From contig JAHRHZ010000084.1 in the NCBI GenBank assembly GCA_024137785.1, forward strand, positions 6,845,573-6,909,572: 64,000 nucleotides of DNA, given 5' to 3'. Origin of the DNA: Ginglymostoma cirratum. Lineage: Eukaryota. Shown piece after piece: positions 5,151 to 61,247 of this stretch. The notes beneath the pieces were generated by a model. It searched no databases. It saw only the letters and a list, made by a program, of their open reading frames with translations, and was not told the origin of the DNA. The translations under genes were made by a program, and so were the position numbers. The first letter of the stretch is position 1; each line of letters opens with the position of its first letter.

Positions 5151-7164
5151 TGGAATTAAGCGCAGTTGCAGGTCATATCCTGAACTGTGGAGAGAGACCT
5201 CGGTAAAACATGAGGTTAGTAAGCATCACAAAAATAACAGCTTGATGTTCTGTGGGGTCAGATAAAACAATGTGCCAGAAACTAAGTGCTGAACGTGTAA
5301 CAAGTAGAAGAGAACAGCACCATCCTTACCAGCAAATCTGGTAGCAGATTCAAGGTTAGAACTGCGATAATTGGAGTGCAACAAATTTTGAGGGATACAG
5401 GTTTTTGTCTGTAACGGGAGCTGGGCAAGTAAGGCATTCAATGTGAAATTGACCATTCTCAAGCTGAAAGACCGAGGGAGGGTTCCAGTAGAGGGGAGTG
5501 CTTGGAAATGCATAAAAGAGTCCATGGAGTAGCATGGGATTCCTGCCCCAGAGTTCGACATCATGTTCGTCCTGAAATTCATTGAGGTGGGTTCAAAAAG
5601 GCAGAGATTAAATTCTTTGCTGAGTATTGATTGTCGGCATCTGAGTTTATAAAGAAAAGTCACCATGGTCTTACTAGACCATAGGGCTGCCCTCCAAATT
5701 GCAGAGAGATGACTGGTGGTGGTTTCAACTTGAGAGTTACCTTGATTCAGGCCACCGGAGAGTTTCAGATGGAAAATCCTTTATGGCCAACGCACAAAGT
5801 AAACCCATACCTTTCGTGTCACGCTGCATTGCAAACCAGCCATTCAAGGTAACTGACCATCGTTGGAATAGTGAACACTCAGACAGTATCGTGAATCCAG
5901 GACAAATTGTGAAATTAGAAGAAGGGATAAAGTCAGTGAATAAGAAGGGAGGAAGAATCCAGAAGGGCGCCAGCATCCGTGAATTTTTGAAGCTTGTGTT
6001 CCTTAACAACTGAAAGGAAGAAAAAGTGATTGTTCTTAAAGCTGTGCATGAAAAAATGAATAAAATGGAACTGGAGCCTGAGACAGTGTGAAGTGGTGCT
6101 GACGGAGAAAGAGGTATAAAACTGTGCATGTGGTGGCACGTGGCACTGGGTATGGACGTGAGATGAGGTGGGATCAGTTGAGTATTATTGCTGACCACTT
6201 TTCTAGTGGTGCCCCTGCATCTAGGAAGGAATAAAATACTATGGTAATTCACCCTTCCTCCCCGTCATGTCCACCCTCACATGCATGTGCAGTCCAGGAA
6301 GCAAGACATTTAAACCAAGCCCCCAACCACTCTTCGGACAAACAGCCTTTCCAGTGTATCCTGGCCAGCCGTTTTTTTCCACAATTTATTCATTCGACCC
6401 CCTCTACTTCGACATGTTATTGGCTCGCATCATCTGCTTTGGTTAACATCAATCAAAATAGTGATGACATTCTCTAATTTTGCATTTGGCCTCTCAATAT
6501 AATTCGCAGCTTTGTACCAATGGCTACCACGAAACGTTTTGCCACCTGTTTACTATTTTAAGGTTGTAGAAGACATTTCAGCTCTATTTTATTACAACAG
6601 CTATTCAATTCTTAACCTCTCTTTGCCGCTACTATTTTGGTCTTCAATTTCATTGTTAGTTTACTGTGCTTGGTCTGCTCTGTGTATGTAGGTATTTATG
6701 GCTGTGTGCATTTGAATATTTTTAGGCTTGTACCCTCATGCGAATGTGCGTATGACTGTTTATGAACACCTATATATATATGTATGTATATATGCGCACT
6801 TGCGCCATTGAGTCCTGCAATTCCTATTCAGACAGCATCTCCTTGTTGGTTTACTACATTGGCTTCTGATCTAGCTTCTGATCTTTATTTTAAAATTCTC
6901 GTCTCTGGTTTTTAAATCCTTTTAACACCTTGTTCTTGCTTTAATTCTGATCTCATATTCATGTCTAATTTTCATCATTTGTGGAAATACCCTGGGGTGC
7001 AAAAATTCAAAAGCTCGGTAATTCAATCCAAAGAAACCTCTGCCTGTGTATCCTTTTAAACGTGATATTTCATTAAGCACCAGAATCTGATGTTACTCAG
7101 CTGTAAAATAATTGATAACGTTCTATGTGAAGCGCCTGTTGAACTTTTTTACATTATTAGTAGG

Positions 7165-7500
7165 ATGAGGGTATCACTGGCTAGGCAGCATTTATTACCC
7201 TTCTTAATTAACCAGAGGGCAGTTCAGAGTCAACCATATTGCTGTGAGTCTGGAGTCACAAGTAGGCCAGATCATGTAAAGATAGCAGTTTCTTTCCTTA
7301 AAGGACATTAGTAAACCAGATGGGTTTTTTTTTCCAACAATCCGAAATAGATTCATAGACATAATTAGATTCTTAATTCCAGATATTTTATTGATTTAAA
7401 AGTCCACCATCTGTCGTAAGGATGCAAACGCGGGACCTCAGAACATTTTCCTGGATCTCTAGATTAACAGTCGAGCGATAATACCACAAGGCCATTACTT
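7165..7500 (-). mobile_element. SINE with L2/CR1-type 3-prime tail, present only in duplication copy 1
   Basis: CAGCATTTATTACCC tail motif is shared with 9750 and other copies. Absent at the homologous position near 51930. Confidence 0.6.
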
Positions 7501-9709
7501 CCCTTGTACACCAACTAATTGTTTTACTGTTACATGCGTGAGTGTGGGCCTGTATAGCCGTCTTTGTTTAATTTTGATTTTCTCGCCTCAATTCGCCCTT
7601 TTACTTTTAAATTCTTCTCATTTGTCATTTATTCCATACTTATTCAAAGTTTTGGCCGCAGAGAGACCTATTTTTGGCATTTTTTCTATTACATTATTGT
7701 TGACGCTCAAGTGTGAATTCTTGCAACTTATCTACTAAAACAGATTACAATAGATTCCAAATTCTAGCTCGTTTTTAGTTTCATTTAGTTAATCATTGCA
7801 GTCATTTGGAGAACAGAACTTCATTACAGCTAATAACATGATGGAAACACTTGCGGTTAGACGTTGCGTGCATCTCAGCATGGTGCGAGTTAACACTGCG
7901 CTCATTTTACTTTGACGCTTGGTCGAAGTACAATTTAAGAAATGTATTTATAATTTCGCAACCAAACAGTTCTACAATCGCTCTGCAATGTCCATGTTTA
8001 GCAATTCCTAAGCGCGTTGATTCTGAAAGGCAGTACGCGATGTCAACTCAATCATCATTGTTATTCCGAGTTTGCCCTCAGTTCAACACCCGCTGCTCCT
8101 TCATTTGGGGTGTTTACATCGTAGGTCTTGTCAGTGGCGTTTCACGTCGCCTTACTCGTCCATTTATAGGGTCAGAAATCCGGTTCCAAGTCTACTTAAG
8201 GCAGAGTGCAAATCCAGCTATGTGATTTACCTACTATCAACGTTAAACATAATTCACTTTAGAGAAAAGTATTTTCTTTTAACTTGAGAATATTTAACAG
8301 AGAATCATTTACGTTTTTCCTTCGAGTCAATCACTGAACAGTTGACTACATCCAGAAAGCTTAATCTGTCTTTATTAAGTTACATCAAGCCTGGAAAAAA
8401 AGGAGGGAAAATGACAGTTATATCCAGTTATTATGGAGGATAAAACTGTGGCTCAACAATTTCTTGGGGTAATGAATTGTCGAATATTGTAGTTTGCGCA
8501 TTCCAAAGGAATGCTCCTGTTGTGGTAGAAGATAACATAATGCAATTCACCATTGATTTTCTGCAGCGCATTTTGCGGCCACTTGAGCTACCAAAGTAGC
8601 TCAAATAACTTGACATATTTGATACGTCTACATTTGTCATGTTGTCACTATCATGCTGGAAATATGGTGCCCACACTGCACATAAAAAAGCCCCACAAAA
8701 GGAAACATTATAGCGAGCAGTAAAATACTTCGGTGAAGTTGTTTGAGGGATGAATATTAGCCAGGACACAATCAATACGATGAGTGACTGTACTAAACAA
8801 CTTTTATTCACGTCATTTTGAATTTCACAAGAGGATATCGTTACAGTATATCATGTATAAGTACATCATTACTCGACTAGTAAGCAACACACAAGGAACA
8901 TGACACAGTGTTTATTAGGTTCTTGCCTCCCATCTTTGTTTAAACAGTTATTTCCTGCAGAAGGGAAAGAGATGACCATTAGTTATTAATGTACCCAAGC
9001 ATCCTGGTGGTTGTCAAAGAGCTGAGGCTGCTGTGGCAAGAGTAATGGTGTTAGGTCGCCTGGGTATTGAGAATCATATGGAGAACTCTCACTCAATGTT
9101 CTGAATTCCACTAAAATCCCGGCTCTGGATTTACATTGGGAAATGGGAGCATTGGGAAGAAACCAGTTACAGCTCATTGCTATTGTCTTGCTGCTACCGC
9201 TTCATAATGTTGCATTTTATGCGCATTGAGTTCTGTAAGAGTTCTCGAGAATTGTTAAATTCTAATTAATTTTATACATGTCAGCGATATCATATTGGTG
9301 AAATAAATATATTTTATTTTATTTAGCACTTCATTGACTCTCTTTTGAACGATCTGTTCGTGCCAGAGGGAGAAGTGGAAACAGATATGTTCATTGCAAA
9401 ATCTTATTACCAGCAGCAGATAAACGAAATGACTTGCATAGACATGCAACTCTCTGAAAAGGCTTCACCACCATGAAGTACTTTTGAAGTTTTGGCAACT
9501 GCTGACGTCTGAAGAAATATGAAAGACAAGTAACAATCTGATGAGTGACGTGGACAACAATTAGATAATCTGGAAATACCATCTATGACATATTTTGGCC
9601 ATAGCTCCAGAAGAGCTCATTAAGGCATGTGAATAATACCTATTATACGAGAGCCTGAAAGGCATAATTCAGAGAAAGTACATTTATGAACATGAGACCT
9701 TTTTTTTTA

Positions 9710-12550
9710 AATATCATTGGGAAGTGGGGCTTGGGCGTAACTGGCTGGCCAGCATTTATTGCCCATTCATAGCTGCCCTTGAGAAGGTGGTGGCGAACTG
9801 CCATTTTTAATTGCTGCAGTCCACGTGAGAGGGTGATCATCAACGCCCGTATTAAGGGAATTTCCAAGTCAAGGTGGTGAGACGCTTGGAGAGAAACTTG
9901 AACGTGTTCCCATGTATCTGCTGCCTCTCTCCTTCCAGATGGCAGTGGTCCAGGGTTTGGAATGTACTTTCAAAGGATCTTTGGTGCACTTCTGCAGGGC
10001 ATCTTTCAGAAGGTAGACACAGTTGCGACTGAGCACTGTTGCAATGAAAGGAGTAGATGCTTGTCGATGTGATGCAAATCAAGTGGGCGAAGTTGTCATT
10101 GGGTGATATCAAAATTCTTCAGAGTTGTTTGAGATACAGCTATCCAGGCAACGTGAGGAGTATTCCATCATTCACCTGATTTGTGCCTTGTAGATGGTGG
10201 GCAGAATCTGGGGAGTCAGGAGGTGAGTTAAGCACCGCAGTATTCCTAGCCTCGAACCAGCTTTTGTATTCGTTATGTTTATGTGGCAAGTACAGCTGAG
10301 TATCTGGTTAATGATAAACCCAGGGTGTTGATTGTGGAGATTCAGTGATGGTAGCACCATTGAATGTCAAGGGCAGTGGTTAGATTATCTTTTATTTGAG
10401 GTGATCATTGCTGGTGTTTGTGTGATACGAATGTTACCTGCTATCTATCATCCCAAGCCTGAATATTGTCCAGATCTTGTTGCATTTGAACATGGGTTGC
10501 TTCAGTAGCCGATGAGTCATAAATGCTGCTGAACTTATACAAACATTGCAGAATATCCCCACTTCAGACCTTATGATGGAATAAAGGTCATTGATGAAAG
10601 AGCTGAAGATGGTTGGATTTGTACACCACCTTGAAGAACTCCTGCAGAGATGTTTTGGAACTGAGATAACTGCCCTCCAACAACCACAACTATCTTCAAT
10701 AATGCCACTTATGACTACAACCAGTGGAGATTTTGCTCCCTGTTGTCCATCAATTCCAATTTTTCTCGGACATGTTGATGCTACATTCAGCCCAATGTGG
10801 CTTTGATGTCACGGGCTGTCACTCTCAAGTCCCTTCTCCAATGCAAGATAACAAGGTGTAGAGCTGAATGAACACAGCAGGCCAAGCAGCATCATAGGAG
10901 TACGAAGGCTGATGTTTCGGGCCTAGACCCTTGAAGGGTTGAGGCCCGAAACGTCAGCTTTCCTGCTCCTATGATGCTGCTTGGCCTGCTGTGTTCATCC
11001 AGCTCTACACCTTGTTATCTCGGATTCTTCAGCATCTGCATTTCCTATTATCCCTTCTCCAATACAGCTCGTTTGTCCATGTTTGGAACAAGGCTGTAAT
11101 GAGGCCAGGAACTGTGTGGCCCTGGCTAAACCCTTAGTGGGCCCCAGTCAGCAGGTTTTTATGAGCAGATAATACTGGCTAGCACTGTCGATAACAACTT
11201 CCATTACTTTAATTATGATTGAGAGTCAACTGTTTGGGCAATAATTGGCTGGGTGGATTTATCCTGCTTTTTGAGTACAGGGCATGTCTGGGCTATGTTC
11301 CACATTATCGGATTGATGCCACGATTGTCGATATACTGGAAGATCTTGGCTAGGGGCGCAGCAATTTGTAGAGCGCACGTCTTCAGTATTATAGCTGGAA
11401 GGTTGGCGAGGCTCATAAGCTTTGCGGTATCTAGTGGCTCCAGCATTTTTCTTGTTATCATGTAAAGTGAATCGAATTCACTAAAGACAAGTGTCTGTGA
11501 TGTTGGGGACCATAGCAGGAAACTAAGATGGATCATCCACTCAGGAATTTTGGCTGAAGTTTCCTGTGAATGATTCAGTTTTACCTTTATCACTGGTGTG
11601 TTCGGCTCTTCCAGTATTAATGATGGGGATATATGTGAAGCTTCCTCTTTGTACAGTGAATTATGTAATTGTCCGTCACAAGTTATGCCAGGATGTGGCA
11701 GGATTGTGAAGCTTCAATCTGATCTGTTGGTTTTAGGATTACCTAGCTCTGTCTATCATTTGCTGCTCCTGCTATTTGGCATGCAAGTATTACTGTTTTA
11801 TAGCTTCACTAGGTTGATGCCTCAATTTTAGGTATGGCTGGTGTTACTCATGGTGCGCCCTCCTGCACTGTCCATTCAACAGTGTCAATCCTGTAGCTTA
11901 ATGTTAATAACTGAGTATGAGAATATGCCAGGCCATCGAGTTATAGATTGTGCCGCAGTACAGTTCTGCTGTTATTGACGCCCCAAAGCGCCTCATTGAT
12001 GCCCAGGCTTACGTTGCATGATCTGTTCCATTTAGCACAGTGACAGACTCACACAACAAGATGGAGGGTATTCTCAATGTGTAGACGGGCAATGTTTCCG
12101 CAAGGAGTGTGCAGTGGTCACTCGTACCAACACTGTCATGGACAGATGCATCTGCTGCTAGCAGATTGGTAAGGACGAGGTCAAGTATTATTATCTCCCC
12201 TCTTTTTGGTTCCTCAACTAGCTGCCACAACTCTAGACTAGAAGTTATATCCTTTCCGGTCCGGCCAGCTCGAACAGTAGTGCTTCTGCAGAGCCACTCT
12301 TGGTGGTCAGCATTGAAATCAACCACCTGGTGTACATTTCGAGCCCTTGCCACCCTCAGTTCTTCTTCCAAGCATTGTGCAATATGGAGGAGCACTGATT
12401 CATTAGTCCAGAGAGGATGGCATGTGATAAACAGCAGGAGGTTCTTGTCCACGTTTAACCTGAAGTGATGATACTTCATGGGGCCCAGAGTCAAAGTTGA
12501 GGACTGCCAGGTCAAGTCCACTCCGACTGCACACGACAGCGCCGCCAACT
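9710..12550 (-). mobile_element. Decayed L2/CR1-clade LINE (APE endonuclease and RT remnants)
   Basis: Minus ORFs: VVDFNADHQEWL...ILDLVLTN...GTSDH (APE) and PAIILKTCA..IAAPLAKIFQ..WNIAQTCPVLKK (RT N-terminus). Tail near 9750-9800. Confidence 0.8.
10846..11050. mobile_element. Palindromic short element derived from a Penelope-like terminal repeat, nested in the LINE
   Basis: AGATAACAAGGTGTAGAGCTG...CAGCTCTACACCTTGTTATCT inverted arms of about 85 bp. The same arm heads the element at 29870. Confidence 0.8.
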
Positions 12551-12947
12551 CTGCTGAATCTATCCTGCCAAAGTATTTTTTAATTGTAGTCGCAATCGTC
12601 ATCAGCTGTTGACAACCTGCGTACGATAGAGACCTACAATTAATACAGATAATTTCCCGTTTTTTTTAGCAGTATTGGCTAAGTTCAGAAAGCGAAAAAA
12701 AAACCCTTCCTCCTATTCCTTCAAGTGATGGGTGAAATTTTTTAAACATGATTTTCTTATAGAATCATTATTCTGTACAAAGCAGATGCTGTTTAACATC
12801 ACTCAACCTTTAATCTTGAGATCTTTAATAGCGAAAATGCTATTCAACTCTCGAAAACAAAAAAGGCGAATATTTTATTCTGAACTCGATAATTCTAGGA
12901 AACACAACTGAAGTGAATGTGGTAATATTTGTAAGCACGATTCCCTG

Positions 12948-13678
12948 ACATGTCAAGTGCAAGATGCAAGATTCTATATCTGTTATGACTTCATTAAATG
13001 GAGAAAAACCTGGGAGTGTTATGCAGAGAAGTCTTATTCCTGTGTGACGAAGCATAACCAAATTCAATTCTCCACTTGACCTTCACACTGACCTCTCTGT
13101 GCTCGGTGCGTCGTTGTGTTCCAGTAATGCTCATTGATCGCTGCACGAAGAGCATCTTGTTGTCCGATTAGGGACTTTATAGTCTTACGGACTAAACACT
13201 GAGTTTATCAGTTTTTGAAAGCAGTCTTGCGTTTTGTTGCTCATATTACAGCAGTGTGCCTGTTCAAGGGCACGAGTTCTGTTTCATTTTTTCTTTTCGC
13301 GCATTGCCATTCTATTTGGCTACGTCCGAGTAACTCTCCAAATGTCCATCACTTCTGTGTTCCCCCTTTCAGAGGCCTCCTTTTGCACGATTTTTTAACT
13401 CTCTGTCTGAACGTGTTACGCTTTTGAACTTTACAAATTTCTAATGGAAAATTGCTGTCCTTGGAAATTTACTCGGATTCTTCTTCCACCTGTGCTGCCT
13501 GATCTTCTGAGGGTTTGCACCTCCTGGTACATTGCACGCAGCTGGAAAATGGCACTTGATCACATGTCAAGTGCAAGATGCAAGATTCTAGATCTGTTAT
13601 GACTTCATTAAATGGAGAAAAACCTGGGAGTGTTACGCAGAGAAGTCTTATTCCTGTGTGACGAAGCATAACCAAATT
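12948..13678 (+). repeat. 117-bp direct repeat (12948-13064 and 13562-13678)
   Basis: Two near-identical copies (2 mismatches seen); the duplicated ORF text MLRHTGIRLLC reflects this. Confidence 0.9.
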
Positions 13679-15772
13679 AACCCCAATATGGCTCATAAAA
13701 AAGTCAACAGATACTGAAAGATCATGAATGTATTTCTAATAGTTAATATTTAATGTCATGTCTCCATTTTCGGAGTTTTCATTCCACCAATCTAACTTTA
13801 CCTTTGTATGAGATCTTACTGATACCTGTCCTGATATTGCGCCCCTTGCTACTTAGTAACAATTACCCGTTGTAAATCGTAGTGAGACTTTGTTCTTCAA
13901 ACACCACAAATAATTACGACACACATTTGAGCCTGTATGTGACAATTTATTTCTGCTCCAGTGGTATCTATCTCTAACTTCGCTGGAAGATAATCACTGT
14001 AAGTCGGCACAAGGAAAACAGTGTCATACATAGATGGCAAAAACTCGCAAATCATTAGGATATAATGAGGGGAATCAATTGAAGTGACCAATCATTCTTC
14101 AACAACCAAATTGCCAACCGAAATTCGCAGCTTTCGATCAAGCCGACGCGAAGAGGAATTTCACATGTCTATGGCAATATTGAAGATCTCACAGTTATGG
14201 TTAGAGAGTATAATGAGCCATTTATTGGTATAACTTCCAGAACTCTGTCCTGAATCAGTTAAGATGTGAGGTCACCTTGCGTTTCCGGGCTTGACCTGTC
14301 ACCACAGGGGTTCTTGTGCTGCACTGATAGTTTCCCCACTTCTGAGCCAACAGAGCCAAATGAAACAGGCTGTAGTAATGATTCGTAAATTCTCTAAACG
14401 GGTTGATTGGAAAATAACAAAACCTGTCGTCTTTCCTACTCCACATTAAAATGAACAACGATAATTCGCTCAATGACAATTAGGGATGGACAACAATCTT
14501 GCCTTGCTTCTAATGTTCATAATGCTAGTTTTAAAAAAGCAAACAGACAGAATGATTCGCGTTTTAACGATTGACGAGCGAAGAGAGGTGTACTTGAAAG
14601 TAAAGGTCTAGGGTGTGTTTGCAATATTTTGAAGGTGGGAGAGAAGTGGCTCATAAAACATAAGGCAAGTATGTTATATTAAACTAGTCCCAGCCTTTAG
14701 ATGTATGCTCAACTCTGAGGGATGTCAAGGCCTTAAAGTGGACGTTAGAAGCTACTTATTGGAATGTTATTAGGGCTGAGAAACTTCAGTGATGTGGAGG
14801 AAGTGATGTTATTCTTGATAAAGATTGGCTGCATTCAAGATTGTGAAAAGTTTGCGTGGTATAAACTAGCATAAATGTTTTGAAGGCATAAACTAATTAG
14901 GATAAAACATATTCTATCAGCTAACCCGGTAACGAGAGGACAGATTGCTAAAAGCCCCAGATGTTTTTGAATTTCACAGTCGCAATGAGTCCCAGCCTAA
15001 CCGTTCCTGCTGAGGAACAAATGTTCGTGCAGATCCGTAGATGACGGTTACCACCCGGATTCCTGAATGACATTCGTCTACTAATTCAGTGCAAATAATT
15101 CTATTCAGCAAACTGCCACTTGCAACAAGCCACAAGTCTGAAAAACTTGGTCTTACTTTCAGTAAAGTTCCCTTGCTCCGTGAACGCTGTACAAGCTTGT
15201 TTCTGCTCGCCGTTCCACCTCCAGGTATCACCAAACGCATTGCTGTGATTATCTGTTGTGGTTTGAGTGGACTAATAGCTCCAAAAGAAAACGATCTGGA
15301 AATAAGTCTAATTGTCCTCATCAGCACTGCAATAGGAAAAAAGATGAATATAATTATCAATCCAATGGTTCCTGCTGGAAACTTGGGTGATCGGAGGATG
15401 TTAAAGATAATGGTGGCAAGAACCTCAGAGGTCCCAAGATAAGTAGTTGCTTACGTGAAGAGGAATCGTTTAGATGAAGGAGCTGGAGTACTGCGGCGTG
15501 TCCCTGTGGTGACTGAAAACAAAGCAAAACTGTCGATCTTCTGATGGAAACGTTTGAGCAGTAAATTAGGAGGGGACCGCCGACCTAACAAACTCCCACA
15601 GGGTAGTACAACCATAGCCAATACGCCGCATTAGTCATGTGATAAGTTATGTCATAATCTCAAGTTTAACATATTTAGCAATGAAACTCATTTGACCCAA
15701 ACCGACCCAAAACCAGTCAGAATTCTGTCCTCGTTTACAGCAAGTAGACCACTCTCTTTAATCGTTTGCAAT

Positions 15773-15827
15773 ATGTCATTGAGAGCAGCGGTTCTGTTCA
15801 TGGCGCTTCTGGTTATGACTTGGCCAG
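15773..15827 (+). CDS. Locus A exon 1: signal peptide (MSLRAAVLFMALLVMTWP, phase 1)
   Basis: ATG at 15773, 18 mostly hydrophobic codons, then G|GTACTC donor. Phase 1 matches the V exon. Identical copy at 57724. Confidence 0.85.
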
Positions 15828-16041
15828 GTACTCTTAAATGTTACGAAGTGCCCTCTTAGTGTAACTTAGACTGTATTTCATATTCACAGCCACTGTGCGT
15901 TGCAATGTTAGATTCTCTGCTTCTCCAATCCGATGCGCGTAATTGTTCTAAAACGTTTCTTGTATTTTGTTCCTCCGTTGTTTTGTCTATTTTGTAGTCT
16001 TCAGCTATTATTACAATTCTTACTTGTTTTATTTTTAATAG

Positions 16042-16347
16042 TCACTAAAGTAACTTCGAGCAAAGTAGAACAGTTTCCCAAACTCTTGAAGTCGGTCAAA
16101 GGTGACAACGTTTCCATGTTCTGCACATTTCCCATATCTGAAACTGTTCCTGAAGTATTTTGGTGGAGACGCAATGAGGAATCCTTTCTGGAATCCGACA
16201 GCAGAAAGCGATTCCATGTCCAGAAAGGAAGGGGCTCACTTCATATCATCAATATCACTGTTGCAGACTCCGGAATGTATTATTGCAAAATAAAACATCA
16301 GCAAACTCTCATTGGAGCTGGAAGTGGCTCGATGCTGACAGTATGCG
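16042..16347 (+). CDS. Locus A exon 2: V-type Ig domain with germline J-like G strand
   Basis: TTTTAATAG acceptor, G|GTAAGT donor, 306 nt. Motifs MFC, VFWWR, SLHIINITVADSGMYYC and GAGSGSMLTV. Confidence 0.93.
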
Positions 16348-17781
16348 GTAAGTGACACTTCCAGGGGCAGACAACTCTTCAGTTGTTTGGTGTAATTTAT
16401 GTGACGTGAGGTTTTATAATTCGATGAAAATACAATGATGGTGTATTCACTTCACACCTTCATGGGGATCTCTTCCCCGTTGACTTCGCTGTACAACGGT
16501 CTTTGATTTGCTTTCGCCTGTTTTGTGCCTTTTTTCAAGATTAATTCCACTGCTCACTGCGATCATGACTGCACAGTGCCGTTAATGTGATGAGTGCAGA
16601 AACGGTTTATCTTGCGTCAAGATAGTGAAACAGGACAACAAATCAAATCTTGGGGTGAAATTAATTGATGAAATACCATAAAATAATGAACTGCGGAGGC
16701 TAGAAATCGGAAAAAAAAGAAATTGCTGGAGAAACTTAGAATGTCTGGCCGCATCAAGTGTAGAGTCGCCAAGCGTTTTAACTGTACATTTTTCCAATAC
16801 TAGGATGCTCGAAACGCTAACTTTTTTAAAAACAAATGAATAGCAGGATCCAATAAGAGGGAAATCTTTGATCTGGCCCTAAACATTAGATTCTATCCCC
16901 AGTCGTGAAGTTTACAGGACAGTGAAGGTACCCACTTCGTCTGTGGTTCGCCAACTGGACTTTCTGTGATGCATGCACAACAGGGATAGTGAATGAAGGA
17001 CTGTACCAATCATACATAAAGACCTCTGGGATCCTGTGTTTGTAATTTATTATTTCGATGCAGCGTGACTCACGACCGGAGACCAAGATAATACTTTTTT
17101 TTGTCCAAATGGGATTTCTGTAATATCTAAAGCAGATCTGTGGGGAAAATTGAAAAATTCTCTACCTTTGATGGCAATAAAAACTCGCATAAATTTGGAA
17201 ATGAATAAAATATCTCACTCAAACTCAAGCACCATAAACATGCCGAGAAGACATGTTAAGAATATTTGTTATAATAAACAGTAGAACAATACAAACCCAG
17301 GAACATTACTTCCACCTAAGCATTAACTGCGGATCGAGAGGGTGCATGTTTACTTTAGTAATTCGTTAAGGTGGAATTGATATTTCGATGGGGTGTGGGT
17401 AGTTCAGGCAAAGGCGGAAATACGAATCACTTCTAATTCCCCTGTTTACACCAGGGAGAATCTCCTCCAGGGAAAGAAAAAAACATGTCCAACAAACGAA
17501 TGCACTTTCAGATGGACAAATCCCTTAGAATTATTTTAAATCCTCCACTTTACCAAAGGTTTTCCGCCCGGGTTCACCTTCGCTGTGCATTGTTTGAAAA
17601 ACATCCTAACATTATGCCGTGTATTTTTAAAAATAAATGCAAAGACCAAGGTTAAAATACGATAACAAGGAAAACTGTTATCGCATCATGAACAATGTGG
17701 GATGGATGGGGGTGCGGACGCAGTGGAGAGGAGGAAACAAAAGGGGATGTTCGTTAATTAAAAAAAAACTTTCTGTTATAG

Positions 17782-18078
17782 TTCCCCCTACCGACCTGAA
17801 AATCATTCCCGTTGAAGGAGCTTCAGGGAATTACCTGAAATTCGAGTGTAAAACGACTGCTTTTTACCCTGAGGATTCAGGAATCTCCTGGCTAAGAGAT
17901 GGTGTTAAAATTCAGGCTGGAATAGAAACTGTGATAAACAAGACCGTGGATGGCCTTTATGAAGTTACTAGTTCATTGGAAGAAACACTGCCTGCGCAGA
18001 GCAGCGCAGTTTATACCTGCCTGATACCTCACGAATGTCTTAAGGCACCCGCCAGCGTCAGCTACACTTTTAATCGAG
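17782..18078 (+). CDS. Locus A exon 3: C1-set Ig domain
   Basis: TTATAG acceptor, G|GTAAG donor, phase 1-1. C1 signature: ECKTTAFYPEDSGISWLRDG, DGLYEVTSSL, YTCLIPH. Confidence 0.93.
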
Positions 18079-19488
18079 GTAAGATTGAACATGTTCCCAA
18101 AATGGAATTGGGGTCTGTGATGGCGGCGGGGTGGGAATCGGGTAGGAAAGAACTTAAACGTGTACTTTTAAGGCGTGTAAGGGTGACCGGTGTTCATTCG
18201 CAATGCCACAGAAATGGAAACAAAACAAAATATTTTAAGGTCGCTTGCTGACACAGAAGGGTGAATCGGTCTCTGAATGACCTGAAACGGGAGGTTGACG
18301 GGAAAACTGCTCAGACGTTGATAAATCGACAACATTTAATTGCTGAGTGAAATGAAAGTTCATATTAAATAGATCCATTCCGCCTGAGTACCTTTTACAA
18401 GCGGTACATGTATATTGTTTACCCTGTCCAGCAAATCTCCGCCAACAACGTCTTCAGTTGTCTGTATCCTAAACTTGGAAAATTCCGGCCTCTCCCTGTA
18501 CCGCTGTGGTTTTCCTTGTTTAGGACGCTTCTTCATCCTTATTTCTCTCTCTCCTAGGACTACTTTATGTATGGCTGATAACGCCCTGTGAAGTGTCTTA
18601 GAATTATTTTTAACACAGCTAAAGGAGCAGTATAATTGCAAATTGCTGTTGTTACATATACCAAAAGTGTCAGTCGGTTTTGTCCGAGAAGGCTGGAGAA
18701 GGGCGTCATAAAGCATACAAAATCCTTTCAGGGCTTGCCAAGCTAAATAAGGAAAGGGTATTTCTCCTGGATGATTGTCTAGAATCGAAAAAAAAACGTT
18801 TCAAAATAAGGGGCAGGTCATTTAGGACTGAGGTGAAGAGGAATTTCTTCAACCACAAACTTGGGAATTCAGAACCACCCTCCCCTGCCCCGCACCGCTC
18901 CCCTCCCCACACTCCACCGCAATGCCGGAAACACTGGGCCAATCAGGTTATAAAATACTGAGATCGACAGATTTCCAAACGTTAAATGATATGTAAATAT
19001 CGCAAGTAAATAACGCTGAGGAAGTTCAACCATGATATAGTTGAATGGTGGAGCGTGCTCGAAGATCCCAGTGTCTCACTCGTCCCTGTCTCTATGTTCC
19101 TTGGTAACCGAAATTAGGAATTGACAACTTTGCCAGATCTTGCAATTGTTGTTCATCTGTCTGGTTTAAGACAATGAGTAAGTAAGTGCAAATTCCTTTA
19201 CTTACAGCAAACAACCCTCCTATGCAGCGAGGTGGTTCTCGCTGCTTTAAGTCATGAAATGTGTCTTCTCCATAAAATGCATGCTGAGCTGCTGAGTTGA
19301 CGTCCTCTGATGCACTTTACCGCCCTTGTGTAGTTATTCCCATCGAAATTAAAACGCTCCAACTTGGCTAATGGCAGGGTTATGCTGGGAGACATCTTTG
19401 TAATTCGTTATCCTGTACATGATGCTCTGCGCATGTAACTCGTTGTGTTTCACAATTGTTCACTTCCATCAATTGTTGATCCCTGTAG

Positions 19489-19593
19489 GTGAAGATATCA
19501 ATCTTCCGCTGATCGTTGGATGTGTCGGAGGGACATTGGCAATGTTACTATTCATAATATGTTTGATGACACACAAGTTGAAGGCATGGGCTG
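19489..19593 (+). CDS. Locus A exon 4: transmembrane segment (GEDINLPLIVGCVGGTLAMLLFIICLMTHKLKAWA)
   Basis: CCCTGTAG acceptor, G|GTAAG donor, phase 1-1. About 22 hydrophobic residues with no charge, followed by a basic stop-transfer. Confidence 0.88.
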
Positions 19594-19924
19594 GTAAGAA
19601 CCTTTCTTATTTTGCTGGGTACCTTTTATTTCCTTAGATCCAGCTTAAAAGCATGAAGAGCGTGTGATCAATCAAGGGCTGTGACTTCACATTGTGCAGA
19701 TGAGAGCCTAACGCAGATCTGAAATGCAAACATTTCACCTTCTTACCCGAACTATACACTTGACTTTTTCATGACCATATTGCTACAATTGAAATTATTA
19801 TTCAGTGCGGATCTAGTTCCTAAACAGGAAAATTTCTGAATCAGATTTTGACTTTCGGCATTAAAGTGAATGTTTTCGAACTGACGACTAGATACGCACA
19901 TCTACAGATTTTATTTCCGTTGTA

Positions 19925-22908: not shown

Positions 22909-23019
22909 CTTAGACAAGGAACAACTGAAGAAAATGTCGTCTATGCTACTGTAAACTTGACAGATAACAAAGGAAAATCCAAACACAGGCACAAAGAAGA
23001 ACACATTGTCTATTTCCAG
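22909..23019 (+). CDS. Locus A exon 6: cytoplasmic ITIM exon (LRQGTTEENVVYATVNLTDNKGKSKHRHKEEHIVYFQ)
   Basis: TTTTTTTCTCTAG acceptor, CAG|GTAAG donor, 111 nt, phase 0-0. Contains ITIM VVYATV. Confidence 0.85.
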
Positions 23020-27379: not shown

Positions 27380-27520
27380 ACCAAGCAAGAAAGCGAAAAT
27401 AATAAACTGACTTACGCTGCTCTGCAAATAGCTGATTCCAAGAAAGCATCAAAACCCAAACAGCAAGACAGTTCCGCATTATATGCAGAAGTAAAGGTGA
27501 CAAAGAAAGCGAGAATCTGA
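27380..27520 (+). CDS. Locus A exon 7: terminal ITIM exon (TKQESENNKLTYAALQIADSKKASKPKQQDSSALYAEVKVTKKARI*)
   Basis: CTTTCACAG acceptor, phase 0. ITIM LTYAAL and ITIM-like ALYAEV; TGA at 27518-27520. Confidence 0.85.
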   Translation, partial: TKQESENNKLTYAALQIADSKKASKPKQQDSSALYAEVKVTKKARI

Positions 27521-50860: not shown

Positions 50861-53354
50861 GTGTAGGACAATGTGAAGTGGTGCTGATGGAGAGAGAGGT
50901 TTAAGAGTGTGCATGTGGTGGCACGTGGCACCGAGTATGGACGTGAGATGAGGTAGGATCAGTTGAATTTATTGCTGACTACTTCTCCAGCTCTTCCCCA
51001 AGATTAGGGAGGATTAAAAAACTCTGGTAAACCTCCCCATCCAGTCTCCGCCGCCTCATGTCCACCCTTCCTTGCATTTGCAGTGCAAGAAGCAAGCCAT
51101 CTAAACCAAACACCCAACCACTCTTAGGGCAAACAGCCTTTCCAGTGCATCCTGGCCAGACCATTTCACATAATTTATTCATTCTACCCTCTCTACTTCT
51201 GCATAGTGTTGGTTCGCATCTTCTGCTGAGATTAACATCAGTCAAAATATTCATTAAATTCTCTAACTTTGCATGTGGTCTCTTAGCATAATTCACTGAA
51301 ATGTGCCAATAGCTACCAAGAAATGTTTTGGCATCTGCTTACTAACTGAAGGTTGTAGAAGACATTTCAGCTCTATTTTATTACAACAGCGATTCAGTTC
51401 TTCGACTTTCTTTGCCAGTATTATTTTCATCTTCAGTTTTACTATTATTTTACTGTGTTTGGTCTATGTAGGTATTTATAATTGTGTGAATTTTAATATT
51501 TATATACATGTTCTCGTATGTTAATGTGTGCCTGACTGTCTATGTACGCTTATATATATTTATTTATCTCTGTGCACTTGTGCCGGTGAATCCTATAAAT
51601 TCCTATTCAGCCATCATCTCTTTGTTGGTTTATCTTCATTGGCTTCTGATCTAGCAACAACTTTATTTTAAAATTCTCGTCTCTGATTTTCAAATTCCTT
51701 TCATACCTTGTTCTTGCTCTAATTATCATCTCTTGTTCATCTCTAATTTTCATCATTTGTGGATATAACCTGGGGTGCAAAGTCCCAAAGTTCTGTAATT
51801 CAATCCCAAAAAACTCTGCCTGTCTGCTCTTTTAAACCTGCCATTTTATCAAGTACTGGTATCTGACGTTATTCAGATTTTTAAAAAAGTTGATAACGTT
51901 CCCTGTGAAGCGCCTGATGTACCTTTTCCATACGCTACATAATTGTTTTATTGTTACATGCATGAACATGAGACGATGCAGCCGTCGTTCTTTAGTTTTG
52001 TTTTTTTTTGCCTCAATTCGTCCTTTTCTGTTTAAATTCTTCTCATTTGTCACTTATTCCATTCTGATTGGCCTCAGTGAAATCTATTTTTGGCATTTTT
52101 TATATCACACAATTGTTGGCGGTCAAGTGTGTAATCTTGCAACTTATCTACTAAAATAGGTTAAAACTCCTAGCTCGTTTTTATTTTCATTTAGTTAATT
52201 ATTGCTGTCATTTGGAGATTAGAAGTTAATCATTGCTTAATTGTAAAATGGAAATACTTGTGGTTTGACGCTGTGTGCGTCTCAGCACGTGCTCGTTAAC
52301 ACCTCGCTCAAGTTACCTTGTTTGACGCTTCAAAGAAGTATAATTTAAGAAATGTATTTGTAATTTAACATCTGTCAACCAAACATTTCTGCAATCGCTC
52401 TGCAATGTCCAAGTTTAGCAATTCTTCAGCGTGCTGGTTCTAAAAAGCAATATGCGAAGCCATTATCCCGAAGTCAACTCAATGATCGTTGTCATTATGA
52501 GTTTGTCGTTCGCTCAATACCCGCTGCTGCTTCATTCTGGGCCGGTTACCTGTGCTGTCAGTGGTGTTTCACATCGCCTTACACTTCCATTTACTCCTCC
52601 ATTTATAGGGTAAGAAGTCAGGTTCCAAGTCCAATTAAAACAGAATAGAAATCAGACCGCATGAATTGCCTACTGACAAGGTTAAGTATGATTCATTTTA
52701 GAGAAAAATATTTTCTTTTCCTTTGAGAACATCTAACAGAGAATCAGTTATGTTTTTCTTTCGAGGCAATCACTGAACAATTGACTACGTCCAGAGAACT
52801 AAATTATTCTCTATTAAGTTACATCTCGCTAGAAAACATTAGGAAAAATGACAGTTATATCCAGTTTTAATGGAGAATAAAACTATGGCTCAAAAATTTC
52901 TCAGTGAAATGAAATGTCGAATATTTTAGATTGCACATTCCAACGTAATGCTCTAGCTGTGATAGAAAATAACATAATACAATTCACCCGATGATTTTCG
53001 GCAGCGCGTTTTGCGGCCACTTTAGCTAACAAAGTGCTGTATAGCTAACTTGACATGATTGACATGTCTACATTTATTATGTTGTCACTGTCACATTGGA
53101 AACATAGTTCTCACGCTGCACATAAAAAAGCCACACGAACGGAAACATTATGGTGAGCAGATAACATACTTCAGTGAGGGAGTTGAAGGATGAACATCAG
53201 CCGGGACACAAACAATACGATGAGTGATTATGCTAAGCGTCTTTTATTCACGTCTTTTTGAATTTCACAAGAGGACACCGTTATGGTATGTCATCGTAAG
53301 TATACCACTAACTGATTACTATGCAACGCAGAAGATACATAACACAGTGATAGC

Positions 53355-54210
53355 AAGAACTGCAGTTGCTGGAATCAGAGATTACGTAGTGTTGAGCTGG
53401 AGGAACATAGCAAACAAGGCAGATTCAGAGGAACAGGGAAGCTGACGTTTCTAGTCGGGACCCTTCTTCAGAAATGGGGAGGGATGCTCAGAAATAAATA
53501 GAGGAAGGGTGGGGCTAGGGAAGGTAGGTGGGATGGTGATAGGTGAATGCATACAGGCAGTGATCGGGATTGGTTAGTGAGGTGCGAGTGCCAGATAGGT
53601 GAGAGAGAAGATAGACATGTCAGATGCGTCAGGTCAAGGAGACGGTGAGAGGAGGGAGGGTTGATCATGGGGTGAGGCTGGGGTGAGGGGAAGAATTTTG
53701 AAACTGGTAAAATCGACATTCAGGCCCTCGGGCTTAGGCTGCCCAGGCGGCATATGAGGCGCGGCTCCTCCAGATTGCAGGTGGCTTCATTGTGACGCTA
53801 GGGAAGGCCCAGAATGGACATGTTATCCTGGGAGTGGGAGGGGGAGTTAAAATGTTTCGCGACCGAAAGGTAGTATTGTTTGCCGAGTGTAGAGCGCAGA
53901 TGCTTAACAAAACGGTCTCCGAGTCTACACTTGGTCTCACCGATGTAGAGGAGGCCACATTGGGTGCAACGGATGCCGTAGACCAAGTTAACAGATGTGC
54001 AGGTGAACCCACGTCTGATGTCGAAGGTTCGTTTTTCCCTCGAAAGGAGGTGAAGGGGTATGTGTAGGGGCAGGTGTAGAACTTCCTGGTTGCAGGGAAA
54101 GGTGCCTGGTGTGTGGAGTTAGTGGAGTCAGTGGGGAGTGTGGAGTGGACGAGGGAGACGCGGAGAGAGCAGTCCGTACGAAAGGCAGATAGGGATGGGG
54201 AGATAAATAT
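53355..54210 (-). mobile_element. Penelope-like 3-prime fragment, specific to duplication copy 2
   Basis: MVYGIRCTQCGLLYIGETKCRLGDRF is a GIY-YIG motif. Confidence 0.88.
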
Positions 54211-54269
54211 ACAATCCGGACCCACAACCAAACATATATTTCCGTGGCAGATCCCCCCGACTTGATGTT

Positions 54270-54900
54270 AATAATTGAGTGGGAGAATATGCTGGGCCAT
54301 AAAGTTGTAGATTGCGCTGCAGTACAATTCTGCTGCTATTGATGCCCCACAGCACCTCATGGAGGCCCAGAATAAGTTGCTAGATCTGTTTTAAATCTGT
54401 CCCCCTTAAACAGTGATAGTGCCACACAACAAGATGGAGGGTATTCTCAATGTGCAGTGGTTACTCATACCAATACCGTCATGAGTAGATGCATCTGCTG
54501 CTAGCAGATTAGTAAGGATGAGACCAAGTATTATTTATCCTCCTTTCTTGGTTCCCCCACTATCTGCCACAGCCCTAGACTAGCAGTTATGTCCTATCGG
54601 ACCCGACCATCTCGATCAGTAGTGCTACTTCAGAGCCACTCTTGGTTGTCAGCATTGAAATCCACCACCTGGAGTACATTTTGTGCCCTTGCCACCTTCA
54701 GTTCTTCCTCCAAGTATTGTTCAACTTGGAGGAGCACTGATTCATCAGTACAGAGAGGATGGTATGTGATGATCAGCAGGAGGTCCTTGCCCATGTTTAA
54801 CCTGAAGTGATGATACTTCATGGGGCCCAGAGTCGAAGTTGAGAACTCCCAGGTCAATTCCTCCCCGACTGCATACCACAGCGCTACCAGCTCTGCTGAG
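54270..54900 (-). mobile_element. L2/CR1-clade endonuclease remnant, paralogous to about 11910-12550
   Basis: VLQVVDFNADNQEWL; colinear with copy 1. Confidence 0.75.
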
Positions 54901-57723
54901 TCTATCCTGCCAAAATATTTTTCAATTGTAGTCACTAACATAAGCTGTCAACATAAGCTGTTGACAACTTTTGCACGATGGAGACAGCCAAATAATGCAG
55001 ATAATTTCCTGTTCTTTTTTTTTAGCGGTATTGGCGAAGGGATAATCATGAGCTCAGAAAGCGAGAAAAACCTTCTCCTATTCCTTCAAGTGATGGGTGA
55101 GATTTTTTTAACCATGATGTTCTTGCAGGATCAATATTCTGTACAAAGCAGAAGCTGTTTTACATTACTCAACATTTAATCTTGAGACCTTTAATAGAGA
55201 AAATACTATTCAACTCTAGAAATCAAAACAAAAATCAAATTATTCGATTCTGAACTCGATAATTCTAGGAAACAAAACTAATGTGAATGTGCTAATATTT
55301 GTAAGCACGATTCCATAACTCCCAGTAGCTATCATTTAATTTCTGCTCGTGGCATTCGCACTGACCTTTCTGTTCTCGGTGTGTCGCCGGTGTTCCAGTA
55401 ATGCTCATTGATAGCTGCAGGAACAGGACCTTTTTGTCCTATTCGGGACTTTAAATTTTGACGGACGAAACACTGCACGCAGTAGCGAAATGCCACTTGA
55501 TCACATATCAAGTGCGAGATTCGAGATTCCAGATCTGTTATGAGTTCATTGAAAACCTGTGAGTGTTAAATAAAGAACTCTTATTCCTGTGTGAAGAACC
55601 ACCAAATCTCTAATCATTAACGCCAATGTGGCTTATTAAAAAAAAGGCGACAGATACTGAAATATCGTGAATATATTTCAAATATTTAATATTTGATGTA
55701 ATGTCTCCATATTTGGGATTTTCATTCCACAAATTAACATTTACCTTTGTATGATACGTTATTGATACCTGACCTGATATTAAGCTCTTTGTTAGTAATA
55801 ACCCCGTGTTGGAAATTGTCGTGCGGCTTTGTTCTTCACCTTGGAAATACCTGCAGCAATTGAGGGAAGCATCACAAATAATTATGACATACATTTGCGC
55901 CTGTGTGTGGCCATTCATTTCTGCTCAAGTGGTACCTATCTTTAACTTCTTTCGAAGTTCTTTATTGTAAGTCAGCAAATGGATAATAGTGTCATGCAAA
56001 TATGTCCAAAACTGGCCAATCACTGGGATATCATGTGGGGAAACAATTCAAGTGAGCAAACATTCTTCAACACCCAAATTGCCAGCCGAAATTCGTTGCT
56101 TTAGAACAAGCCGAAACTATGAGGAATTTCACATGTCCAAGGCAATGTTAAAGAACTCACAGTTATGGTTAGTGTGTATCATGAACCAATTATTCGTATA
56201 ACAAAACTCAGTTCCGAATTAGTTAAAATATTAGATCACCTTGCGTTTCCGAGCCCCTGTCACCCACAGGGGTTCTTGTGTTGCAGTGATAGTTTCCTCA
56301 CTTCTGATCCAACAGAGCCAAGTCACACAGGCTGTAGGAACGAATCACAACGTCTCTAAATCGGTTGATTAGAAAATAACAGGACCTGACACCTTTCCTA
56401 CCCCACATTAATATGAACAACGAGGATTCGCCCAAGAGTAATCGGGAATGGACAATAATCCTGCCTAGCTCCTAATGTTCACAATATTAGTTTTAGAAAG
56501 CAAACGGAGAGAATGATTCACGTTTTAACGATTGGCAAGAGAAAGAGAGATGTACTGAAAGTAAAGTTTTAGGGTGTGTTTACAATGTTTTGAAGATGGG
56601 AGACAAGTGGTTCATAAAACATAAGGCAAGTAAGTTATATTAAACTAGTCCCAGCCTTGAGACGTATGCTCAACACTGACGGATGCCAAGGTCTTCAAGC
56701 GGATGTTAGAAGATATTTATTAGGATGATATTAGAGTTGAGAAACTTCAGTGATGTGGAGGAAGTGGTGTTCTTGATCGAGAAGTTTAGCGGTATTCAAG
56801 ATTGTGAAAAGTTTTCGTGGCATAAACTAGCATAAATGTTTTGAAGGCATAAACTAATTAGGATAAAACATATTCTATCAGATAACCCAGTAACTAGAGG
56901 ACAGATTGTTAAAAGGCCCAGAGGTTTTTGAATTTCACAGTCGCAATGAGTCCCAGCCTAACTGTACCTGCTGAGGAACAAATGTTCGTGCAGATCCGTA
57001 GATGACGGTTACCACCGGGATTCCTGAATGACGTTCGCCTACTAATTCAGTGCAAATAATTCTATTCAGCAAACTGCCACTTGCAACAAGCCACAAGTCT
57101 GAAAAACTTGGTCTTACTTTCAGTAAAGTTCCCTTGCTCCGTGAACGCTGCACAAGCTTGTTTCTCCTCGCCGTTCCATCCCCAGGTATCACCAAACGCA
57201 TTGCTGTGATTATTTGTTGTGGTTTGAGTGGACTAATAGCTCCAAAAGAAAACGATCTGGAAATAAGTCTAATTGTCCTCATCAGCACTGAAATAGAAAA
57301 AAAAATGAATATAATTATCATTCCAATGGTTCCTGCTGGAAACTTGGGTGATCGGAGGATGTTAAAGATAATGGTGGCAAGAATCTCAGAAGTCCCAGGA
57401 TAAGTAGTTGCTTACGTAAAGAGGAATCGTTTAGATGAAGGAGCTGGAGTACTGCGGCGTGTCCCTGTGGCGACTGAAAACAAAACAAAACTGTCGATCT
57501 TCTGATGGAAACGTTTGAGCAGTAAATTAGGAGGGGACCACCGACCTAACAAACTCCCACAGGGTAGTACAACCACATCCAATACGCTGCATTAGTCATG
57601 TGATAAGTTATGTCATAATCTCAAGTTTAACATATTTAGCAATGAAACTCATTTCGCCCAAAACCAGTCAGAATTCTGTCCTCGTTTACAGCAAGTAGAC
57701 CACTCTCTTTAATCGTTTGCAAT

Positions 57724-57778
57724 ATGTCATTGAGAGCAGCGGTTCTGTTCATGGCGCTTCTGGTTATGACTTGGCCAG
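57724..57778 (+). CDS. Locus C exon 1: signal peptide
   Basis: Identical to 15773-15827, including the donor site. Confidence 0.82.
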
Positions 57779-57992
57779 GTACTCTTAAATGTTACGAAGT
57801 GCCCTCTTAGTGTAACTTAGACTGTATTTCATATTCACAGCCACTGTGCGTTGCAATGTTAGATGCTCTGTTTCTCCAATCCGATGCGCGTAATTGTTCT
57901 AAAACGTTTCTTGTATTTAATTCCTCCGTTGTTTTGTCTACTTTGTAGTCTTCAGCTATCATTACAATTCTTACTTGTTTTATTTTTAATAG

Positions 57993-58298
57993 TCACTAAA
58001 GTAACTTCGAGCAAAGTAGAACAGTTTCCCAAACTCTTGAAGTCGGTCAAAGGTGACAACGTTTCCATGTTCTGCACATTTCCCATATCTGAAACTGTTC
58101 CTGAAGCATTTTGGTGGAGACGCAATGCGGAATCTTTTCTGGAATCCGACAGTAGAAGGCGATTACATGTCCAGAAAGGAAGGGGCTCACTTCATATCAT
58201 CAATATCACTGTTGCAGACTCCGGAATGTATTATTGCAAAATAAAACATCAGCAAACTCTCATTGGAGTTGGAAGTGGCTCGATGCTGACAGTGTGCG
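57993..58298 (+). CDS. Locus C exon 2: V-J-type Ig domain
   Basis: Open frame with intact splice sites; 8 nt differences from A exon 2 by manual count. Confidence 0.9.
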
Positions 58299-58710
58299 GT
58301 AAGTGACACTTCCAGGGGCAGACAACTCTTCAGTTGTTTGGTGTAATTTATGTGACGTGAGGTTTTATAATTCGACGAAAATTCAACGATAGTGTATTCA
58401 CTTCACACCTTCATGGGTATCTCTTCCCCGTTGACTTCGCTGTACAACGGTCTTTGATTTGCTTTCGCCCGTTTTGCGCCTTTTTTCAAGATTAATTCCA
58501 CCGCTCATTTCGATCATGACTGCACAGCGCAGTTAATGTGATGAGTGCAGAAACGGTTTATATTGCGTCAAGGTAGTGAAACAGGACAACAAATCAAATT
58601 TTGGTTTGAATTAATTGATGAAATACCATAAAATAAAGAACTGCAAATGCTAGAAAACTGAAAGAAAAGAAATTGCTGGAGAAACTCAGAATGTCTGGCC
58701 GCATCTGTGT

Positions 58711-58786
58711 GAGTTAACGTTTCGAGTCCAGTGATCCTTCTTCAGAACGGTTCTGAAGAAAGGTCACTGGGCTCGAAACATCAGCT
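58711..58786. ncRNA. Back-to-back minimal hammerhead ribozyme-like cores in a palindromic Penelope-derived element
   Basis: Minus strand: GTT-CTGAAGA-AGGATCACTGGACTC-GAAAC-GTT-AAC. Plus strand: CTGAAGA-AAGGTCACTGGGCTC-GAAAC-ATC. Confidence 0.6.
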
Positions 58787-58799
58787 ACCTTTTCACTTC

Positions 58800-59085
58800 A
58801 CAGACAGCCTCAAAATAAGGGAGAGCAGATTTCGGACAGTGTCGAGGAAGGACTTCTTCATTCGAAGAGTTGTGAATCTGTGGAATTCCCTACCCAATGA
58901 AATAGTTAAGGCGTCACCTTTGAATGTTACTAAGGCACAGATCGATTTTTGAACAGTAAAGGAATTAAGGATTATGGTGAGTGAGCGGTAAGTGGAACTC
59001 AGTCCGCGAAAAGATCAGCCATGATATTATTGAATGGCGGAGTTGCCTCAACGGGCCACATGCTCCTATTTCTTATTTTCTTACA
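58800..59085 (+). mobile_element. CR1 3-prime end inserted into the palindromic element
   Basis: LKIRESRFRTVSRKDFFIRRVVNLWNSLPNEIV. The right arm of the host element resumes at about 59088 (GATGCTGCCAAACCTGC). Confidence 0.75.
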
Positions 59086-60950: not shown

Positions 60951-61247
60951 TTCCCCCAACCAAACTGAAAATCGTTCCCATTGAAGGAATTTCAGGGAAT
61001 TACCCGAAATTCGAATGCAAAACAACTGCCTTTTATCCGGAAGATTCAGGAATCTCCTGGCTAAGAGATGGTGTCAAAATTCAGGCTGGAATAGAAACTG
61101 TGAAAAACAAGACCGCGGATGGGCTTTATGAGGTTACTAGTTCGTTGGAAGAAACACAGCCTGTGCAGAGTGGTGTAGTTTATACCTGCCTGGTACCTCA
61201 CGAATGTCTTAAGGCGCCCGCCAGTGTCAGCTATACCTTTAATCGAG
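60951..61247 (+). CDS. Locus C exon 3: C1-set Ig domain (downstream exons not found in window)
   Basis: TTCTAG acceptor, G|GTAAG donor. Open frame VPPTKLKIVPIEGISGNYPKFECKTTAFYPED to YTCLVPHECLKAPASVSYTFNR. Confidence 0.88.

Follow-up and report, generated by a model that had tools for sequence, protein, structure and literature searches.

Exon-restricted homogenization, in which the binding domains of receptor paralogues are kept alike, is well documented in mammals and, for CEACAM, in frogs. The best-matched case is the SIGLEC11/SIGLEC16 pair of primates, in which a tract of ~2 kb comprising the upstream region and the V-set exon is homogenized while the rest is more diverged, and both genes are co-expressed (PMC5701461). 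For CEACAM, KLRC/NKG2, and CD300A/C, N-terminal binding-domain exons are described as homogenized between receptors with different signaling ends (PMC2832619, PMC5112662, PMC3210942, PMC12447643). In elasmobranchs, UrIg and UrIg2 are non-rearranging VJ-C1 genes, and the authors who described them invoked gene conversion for the near-identical C domains within UrIg2 (PMC12227049). Here, we analyzed a 64,000-nucleotide stretch of the genome of the shark Ginglymostoma cirratum (NCBI GenBank assembly GCA_024137785.1, contig JAHRHZ010000084.1, positions 6,845,573 to 6,909,572, forward strand; hereafter the window, in whose coordinates all positions are given). The window contains two putative VJ-C1 receptor genes, A and C, and a third paralogue, B. 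We report that A and C share a near-identical tract over their promoter-proximal DNA, leader exon, and V exon, and that this tract very probably arose by non-allelic gene conversion. We found no description of conversion of this kind in the shark VJ-C1 “SIRP-like” family in the literature that we searched.

SIGLEC11/SIGLEC16 is the closest parallel to this locus, as the A/C tract spans 1.85 kb with 940 nt of upstream DNA, the leader, and the V exon, and transcripts of both genes occur in one sequencing run. The two systems differ in their background identity (88-93% for SIGLEC11/16 versus ~82% for A/C) and in the distance between the genes (~9 kb versus 42 kb). Moreover, Siglecs are V-C2 lectins with proven inhibitory/activating pairing, whereas A and C have an antigen-receptor-like VJ-C1 fold and their pairing is a suggestion. 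CEACAM, KLRC/NKG2, and CD300A/C are tetrapod families of other folds, none of them from cartilaginous fish, whereas A and C are elasmobranch genes. UrIg and UrIg2 share with A and C a VJ domain encoded by a single exon, a split leader, and C1-type domains, but UrIg2 contains at least nine C domains, a tail with immunoreceptor tyrosine-based inhibitory motifs (ITIMs) is not described for it, and the conversion invoked for it took place among exons of one gene rather than between two loci. A further likeness is to the SIRPs, which have a J-like strand in their N-terminal V domain and a C1-set domain after it, and among which ITIM-tailed members stand beside members with a basic transmembrane residue. 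SIRPs are V-C1-C1 proteins, however, and the A and C genes have one C1. Thus placed, the A/C locus adds an elasmobranch, VJ-C1 case to the known exon-restricted homogenization of receptor paralogues.

Self-comparison of the window places A and C in a same-strand duplication, which is interrupted by a non-homologous block (A ~8910-11897) and by several indels and whose copy A ends in intron 3, 550 nt 5′ of the A transmembrane exon (Table 1). Identity between the copies is 76-87% per 200 aligned nucleotides and jumps to 94-98% over A ~14.9-16.6 kb. We located this jump with a two-breakpoint likelihood scan over 8916 ungapped homologous A/C columns, using 100 column permutations as the null. The scan returned a log-likelihood ratio (LLR) of 160.4, compared with a mean of 5.7 and a maximum of 18.7 among the permutations. 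Mismatches occupy 65 of the 1843 nt in the tract (96.5% identity), whereas identity in the flanks is 81.6% (7073 nt outside the tract). The original prediction, which had been read from the letters of the window alone, proposed a near-identical non-coding block within a more diverged duplication and named uniform identity as what would speak against it. Both parts agree with what we found, as identity is not uniform and the sharp patch is clear. The predicted extent, 14860-16500, proved slightly too short: the tract is present, and by the likelihood scan it is somewhat longer.

The tract begins 940 nt upstream of the ATG, continues through the leader exon, intron 1, and the V exon, and ends 339 nt into intron 2. 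Differences between A and C within it consist of 65 well-spread sites and one 10-nt indel, and perfect-match runs reach up to 208 nt, whereas 1000 permutations gave no run above 81 nt. At the 5′ edge the change is abrupt, from mismatch-rich sequence up to 14832 to near-identity from 14833 (2-log-likelihood support interval 14831-14866), and the 3′ edge is gradual, with identity falling across its support interval of 16641-16694. Beyond the 3′ edge lies a short transition zone that runs into a very high-copy repeat (word depth >10^3-10^4 in the bin 16685-16883, with short contigs sitting on 16712-16755). Directly after the tract, C carries 1152 nt that A lacks. This C-only segment contains a hairpin repeat and an open reading frame (ORF, 58731-58952), which we take to be the tail of a long interspersed nuclear element (LINE)-type ORF2 by its CR1-type C-terminal motif, and which has no match in Pfam. 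Pfam also returned no match in the two ORFs that overlap the upstream part of the tract or in the repeat ORFs.

Divergence at neutral sites distinguishes the tract from its surroundings. Kimura two-parameter distances inside the tract are 0.038 for upstream DNA, 0.029 for intron 1, and 0.052 for intron 2, versus 0.18-0.25 for the non-coding flanks, and neutral divergence between A and C today is ~0.2 substitutions per site. Synonymous divergence (dS) follows the same division, with 0.047 in the V exon and 0.32 in the C1 exon, which lies outside the tract and has a ratio of nonsynonymous to synonymous divergence (dN/dS) of 0.20. The coding parts of the leader exons are identical (0 differences in 55 nt; C, 57724-57778), the V exons differ at 8/306 nt (C, 57993-58298; five amino-acid changes and three silent changes), and the C1 exons differ at 32/297 nt (89.2% identical; 12 changed codons and 17 silent), so that the counts given in the original prediction are all reproduced. 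At the protein level, identity is 95% for V (5/101 residues differ) and 88% for C1. Because neutral sites fall into two age classes, the 89% identity of C1 reflects an old duplication together with purifying selection, and the 97% identity of V reflects recent common ancestry. The earlier argument that purifying selection does not explain the pattern is upheld by these values, since dS in V and C1 matches that of the neighboring non-coding DNA (0.036 and 0.18-0.25, respectively).

To obtain evidence that is independent of the assembly, Logan contigs of four public runs were aligned to 13700-19650 with a likeness threshold of 90%. Several contigs of runs X1 and X18 show no differences from the window, which identifies its own species as the source of these two runs; runs X3 and X5 come from a sister species (organism B). 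A contig of 378 nt (X1 record 3, 14590-14967) crosses the 5′ edge of the tract in A and carries A letters at 14860, 14921, and 14934, where A and C differ. A spliced contig (X18 record 8) starts at 15703, joins ~15827 to 16042, and contains the leader followed by an A-type V and an A-type C1; over 307 nt, its V departs from A at 1 site, compared with 8 sites between A and C. Another contig (X1 record 7, 1372 nt) lies on the C1 exon of A with 33 differences and has the C letters at 4/4 of the listed C-specific positions (17861, 17989, 17995, and 18007). Its V-to-C1 joint is the same as that of A, its match to A ends precisely at the C1 donor, and a further ~1 kb follows that does not match A. 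At the 90% threshold, we infer from this contig that C is transcribed and spliced to something other than the A transmembrane exon. Spliced contigs of A (depth 24.6) and C (depth 10.9) are present in the same run, X1. Together, these results show that both copies exist as separate loci and that both are spliced and expressed.

We propose that A and C are tandem, same-strand VJ-C1 immunoglobulin-superfamily receptor genes that would have originated in an old duplication of the upstream region and the leader, V, and C1 exons. Much later, non-reciprocal homologous repair would have overwritten ~1.85 kb of one copy with the sequence of the other, although a third close paralogue may alternatively have been the donor. 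Such an event would have reset divergence to ~0.036 from promoter-proximal DNA through the 5′ untranslated region (5′UTR), the leader exon, intron 1, and the V exon into the start of intron 2. At its 3′ end, the tract stops within ~70 nt of the 1152-nt heterology, where heteroduplex or synthesis extension would be expected to stop. The outcome would be a pair of genes that have their ligand-binding domain and proximal regulatory DNA in common and are distinct from the C1 exon onward. In this scheme, three elements are inferred: how the repair took place, that the indel helped to end the tract, and that matched V domains bring a selective benefit. Both flanks of the tract are diverged, which points to a patch and not to a single unequal crossover.

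Could the tract have stayed similar without any exchange, through purifying selection on a regulatory module and the V exon? Some constraint is plausible over the longest perfect run (15706-15913, 208 nt), which covers the 5′UTR, the leader, and the intron 1 donor and is marginally longer than expected within the tract (p ~0.04); this run could, at that marginal level, reflect constraint or a younger, shorter nested event. For the whole 1.85 kb, however, constraint is very improbable: the two introns and the V exon at its silent sites match between the copies as closely as the remainder of the tract does, the edges of the tract are abrupt, and the C1 exon, which is constrained, nevertheless reached a dS of 0.32. 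The tract also diverges between species about as fast as its flanks, with 54/1209 differences (4.5%) inside and 82/1673 (4.9%) outside when sister-species contigs are compared with A (X3 records), and it is therefore not slowly evolving. An artefact of assembly or polishing, in which one copy was built or corrected from reads of the other, might have been suspected at the 3′ edge, which lies in a high-copy repeat and is bridged by none of the contigs listed. Yet 65 evenly spread differences and a 10-nt indel are unlike a collapse, same-species contigs bridge the 5′ edge of A with A-type letters, and messenger RNA contigs link an A-type V to an A-type C1 while others carry the C1 of C spliced from a V exon. 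We consequently regard an artefact as highly unlikely.

Several observations weigh against conversion between A and C as the full account. These include the unbridged 3′ edge, and the V exon of C is not directly visible among the contigs listed. Background identity at the time of the event (~83-85%) would have been low for efficient homologous repair, so the region may have been kept similar by earlier events. In addition, there are same-species contigs that, on a C-like background, lack 131 nt (15327-15457, with GTA in their place), and contigs with a 56/57-nt deletion (15285-15341) occur in both the same species and the sister species. These deletion contigs over 15285-15457 may represent further copies or old alleles of the upstream tract, and as such they lend some weight to another form of exchange, in which a third paralogue elsewhere in the cluster overwrote A on one occasion and C on another, or to a double unequal crossover. 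Nothing in the window requires such an exchange, though, and A and C are mutual closest relatives over the whole tract; the V exon of paralogue B is ~79-80% identical to both A and C, versus 97.4% between A and C. We consider these other forms of exchange unlikely and retain non-allelic conversion between A and C as the best explanation.

The comparison with the sister species also bears on when the conversion would have taken place. Raw divergence between A and C in the tract (3.5%) is slightly below that between A and organism B (~4.5-5%), which places the last homogenization at about the time of the species split or a little after it, and roughly at one sixth of the age of the duplication. 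Contigs of the sister species cover both the tract and its flanks at ~95% identity and are too short to be assigned to an orthologue of A or of C. At the eight sites where the V exons differ, the outgroup paralogue B agrees with A at 4/8 and with C at 1/8, an imbalance that indicates only that C has changed more since the event and not the direction of transfer.

Two sites of gene A that vary between individuals were examined as possible signs of ongoing exchange. At 17935, the window has T (Ile), and other A transcripts, C, and B have A (Lys); a shared polymorphism or ongoing exchange was rejected here, since C and B both carry A and the T of the window is therefore derived. At 16184, the window has C, and an A transcript of another individual, gene C, and the sister species have T; this site is uninformative, as the outgroup B carries a third letter.

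We also searched for a second tract after masking the first. All that emerged was the coding part of C1 (LLR 9.3) and slightly raised identity at 12050-12944 versus 54410-55314, both near the permutation range. The latter, ~3 kb upstream of the tract, has 86.6% identity over 860 nt compared with ~81%, and may represent a conserved element or an exchange that took place earlier. No tandem arrays were found by Tandem Repeats Finder. As for the region just beyond the 3′ edge, one sister-species contig (X5 record 22) matches A from 16754 on, and its preceding 135 nt do not. The A orthologue of the sister species may still carry the 1152-nt repeat body that is absent from A and kept in C.

Table 1. 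Positions in the window of the duplication, the near-identical A/C tract, and the exons of genes A and C and paralogue B
Feature	Position	Strand	Basis and remarks
Older duplication unit, copy A	6082..18937	+	self-BLAST and global alignment
Older duplication unit, copy C	50867..62076	+	self-BLAST and global alignment
Tract attributed to conversion, copy A	14833..16686	+	two-breakpoint likelihood scan, alignment
Tract attributed to conversion, copy C	56794..58636	+	likelihood scan, alignment; 41,961 nt downstream of that of A
3′ transition zone	16687..16753	+	88% identity (8/67 differ); includes first ~42 nt (16712-16753) of very high-copy repeat
C-only insert or A deletion, 1152 nt	58704..59855	+	alignment gap; directly after tract
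Leader exon of A, coding part	15773..15827	+	MSLRAAVLFMALLVMTWP + G; spliced contig; 5′UTR reaches at least 15703
V(J) exon of A	16042..16347	+	Pfam V-set; germline-joined J-like GAGSGSMLTV; GT..AG joints in RNA contigs
C1 exon of A	17782..18078	+	outside tract; Pfam C1-set; joints 16347 to 17782 and 18078 to 19489
Transmembrane exon of A	19489..19595 (end approximate)	+	RNA contig joint; LPLIVGCVGGTLAMLLFIICLM, without charged residue
Further exon of A	~21437	+	spliced after transmembrane exon in RNA contigs
Cytoplasmic exon of A	22909..23019	+	VVYATV and IVYFQ(V) motifs; homology to horn-shark P0007/P0154
Last exon of A	27380..27520	+	LTYAAL and ALYAEV motifs and stop codon; homology to P0007, E 2e-13
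C1 exon of C	60951..61247	+	open frame, canonical splice sites, transcribed
Paralogue B, V exon	37391-37693		stop (W to stop)
Paralogue B, C1 exon	40654-40947		two stops, both cysteines lost
Paralogue B, transmembrane exon	43035-43127		ENSFHVIAIARFPVSFIIILGMTGIIMYHVK, Arg in hydrophobic stretch; homologous to catshark Arg-type forms

The exons of gene A could be followed from the leader to the stop codon (Table 1). All A exon joints seen in contigs are GT..AG, and these joints place a single C1 exon between the V and transmembrane exons. In the predicted tail, VVYATV, IVYFQV, and LTYAAL fit the pattern (I/V/L/S)xYxx(I/V/L), and ALYAEV is an additional motif; the horn-shark protein P0007, to which these tail exons are homologous, is itself ITIM-tailed. 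Gene A is thus, as judged from its sequence motifs, an ITIM-type receptor.

Up to C1, gene C matches A in having canonical splice sites and open exons; it differs from A in what follows. We looked for an A-like or Arg-type transmembrane exon after the C1 exon of C and found none in the remaining 2.75 kb of the window (61248-64000). Gene C is built from the 5′ half only of an A-like gene, as in exon shuffling onto a different 3′ end. It may be an Arg-type partner of A, a soluble form, or a displaced ITIM form. The boundary of A/C homology (18937/62076) falls just 3′ of a LINE-like fragment (ORFs 18680-18961 and 61787-62044), of which the core at 18819-18855 is a very high-copy repeat. Paralogue B has lesions in both its V and C1 exons and is a pseudogene, but it keeps an Arg-type transmembrane exon, so the cluster must once have held both tail types.

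To place these genes among known proteins, we searched the C1 exon of C against 1.84 billion representative proteins and the ORF around the C1 exon of A against the 90%-cluster set of a 5.8-billion-protein collection. Relatives in both searches came from sharks and rays only, the closest being a Chiloscyllium punctatum fragment with 73-77% identity, and the matches to the ORF around the C1 exon of A were all from other species. The V exon of A, used by itself as a query against the 5.8-billion-protein collection, matched nothing within a length window that shuts out full-length relatives. The relatives carry automatic names such as ‘tyrosine-protein phosphatase non-receptor type substrate 1-like’ (SIRP-alpha-like), “NCR3 ligand 1-like”, “tapasin-related”, and “Ig lambda-like”. 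Among solved structures, the C1 exon matched shark UrIg2 best (E 2e-14), ahead of IgM and of SIRP-gamma, whose match was weak (E 2e-7). We do not favor an assignment of A and C as SIRP orthologues: they have one C1 exon, the best structural match of that exon is UrIg2, and the SIRP name comes only from the automatic annotation of relatives.

Members of this family have one of two tail types, either an ITIM tail or a transmembrane segment with Arg and Asp followed by a short tail. In the horn shark, the ITIM-type P0157 and the other-tail P0159 are 94% identical in V and 84% identical in C1, which is the same pattern as that of A and C (95% and 88%). In the catshark Scyliorhinus canicula, the Arg-type P0158 and P0161, which has an ITIM-type transmembrane segment, are 93% identical in V and 94% identical in C1. 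Another catshark protein, P0151, is only 51% identical to P0158 and P0161 in V and 91-92% identical in C1, a mosaicism in the direction opposite to that of A and C. From these protein alignments, domain-wise exchange looks like a habit of the family.

Because other sharks have both tail types with matched V domains, a pairing of A and C is plausible. The original prediction had combined gene conversion with a paired receptor system. The conversion is well supported by the tract edges, the silent sites, the rate of divergence between species, and the contigs, whereas the pairing keeps the standing of a suggestion, with no transmembrane exon detectable for C in the window. We put the chance that A and C are classical paired receptors at even or somewhat below. 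A fuller proposal, in which an ITIM receptor and a partner with another signaling end would form an opposing pair in an antigen-receptor-like VJ-C1 family, and recurrent conversion would keep their binding domains and proximal promoters matched, is one that we hold tentatively, as possible rather than probable.

Elsewhere in the window, the minus strand at 30100-31700 contains a G+C-rich block (GC 0.53, with strong GC skew) with ORFs that, by their motifs, are presumably reverse-transcriptase fragments of a retroelement.

For this family, one consequence of the shared tract is that trees built from V exons will mislead on orthology. The contrast in silent divergence between V and C1 (0.047 versus 0.32) provides a dated marker for the history of the cluster. 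That a clean, sharp-edged example which includes the promoter exists in a shark suggests that the mechanism is old and general. The practical value of the finding is modest unless C is an opposing partner of A. If A and C do form an opposing pair, the strategy of paired receptors combined with concerted evolution would go back to the base of the jawed vertebrates and would be found in the type of gene that is thought to have given rise to rearranging receptors.

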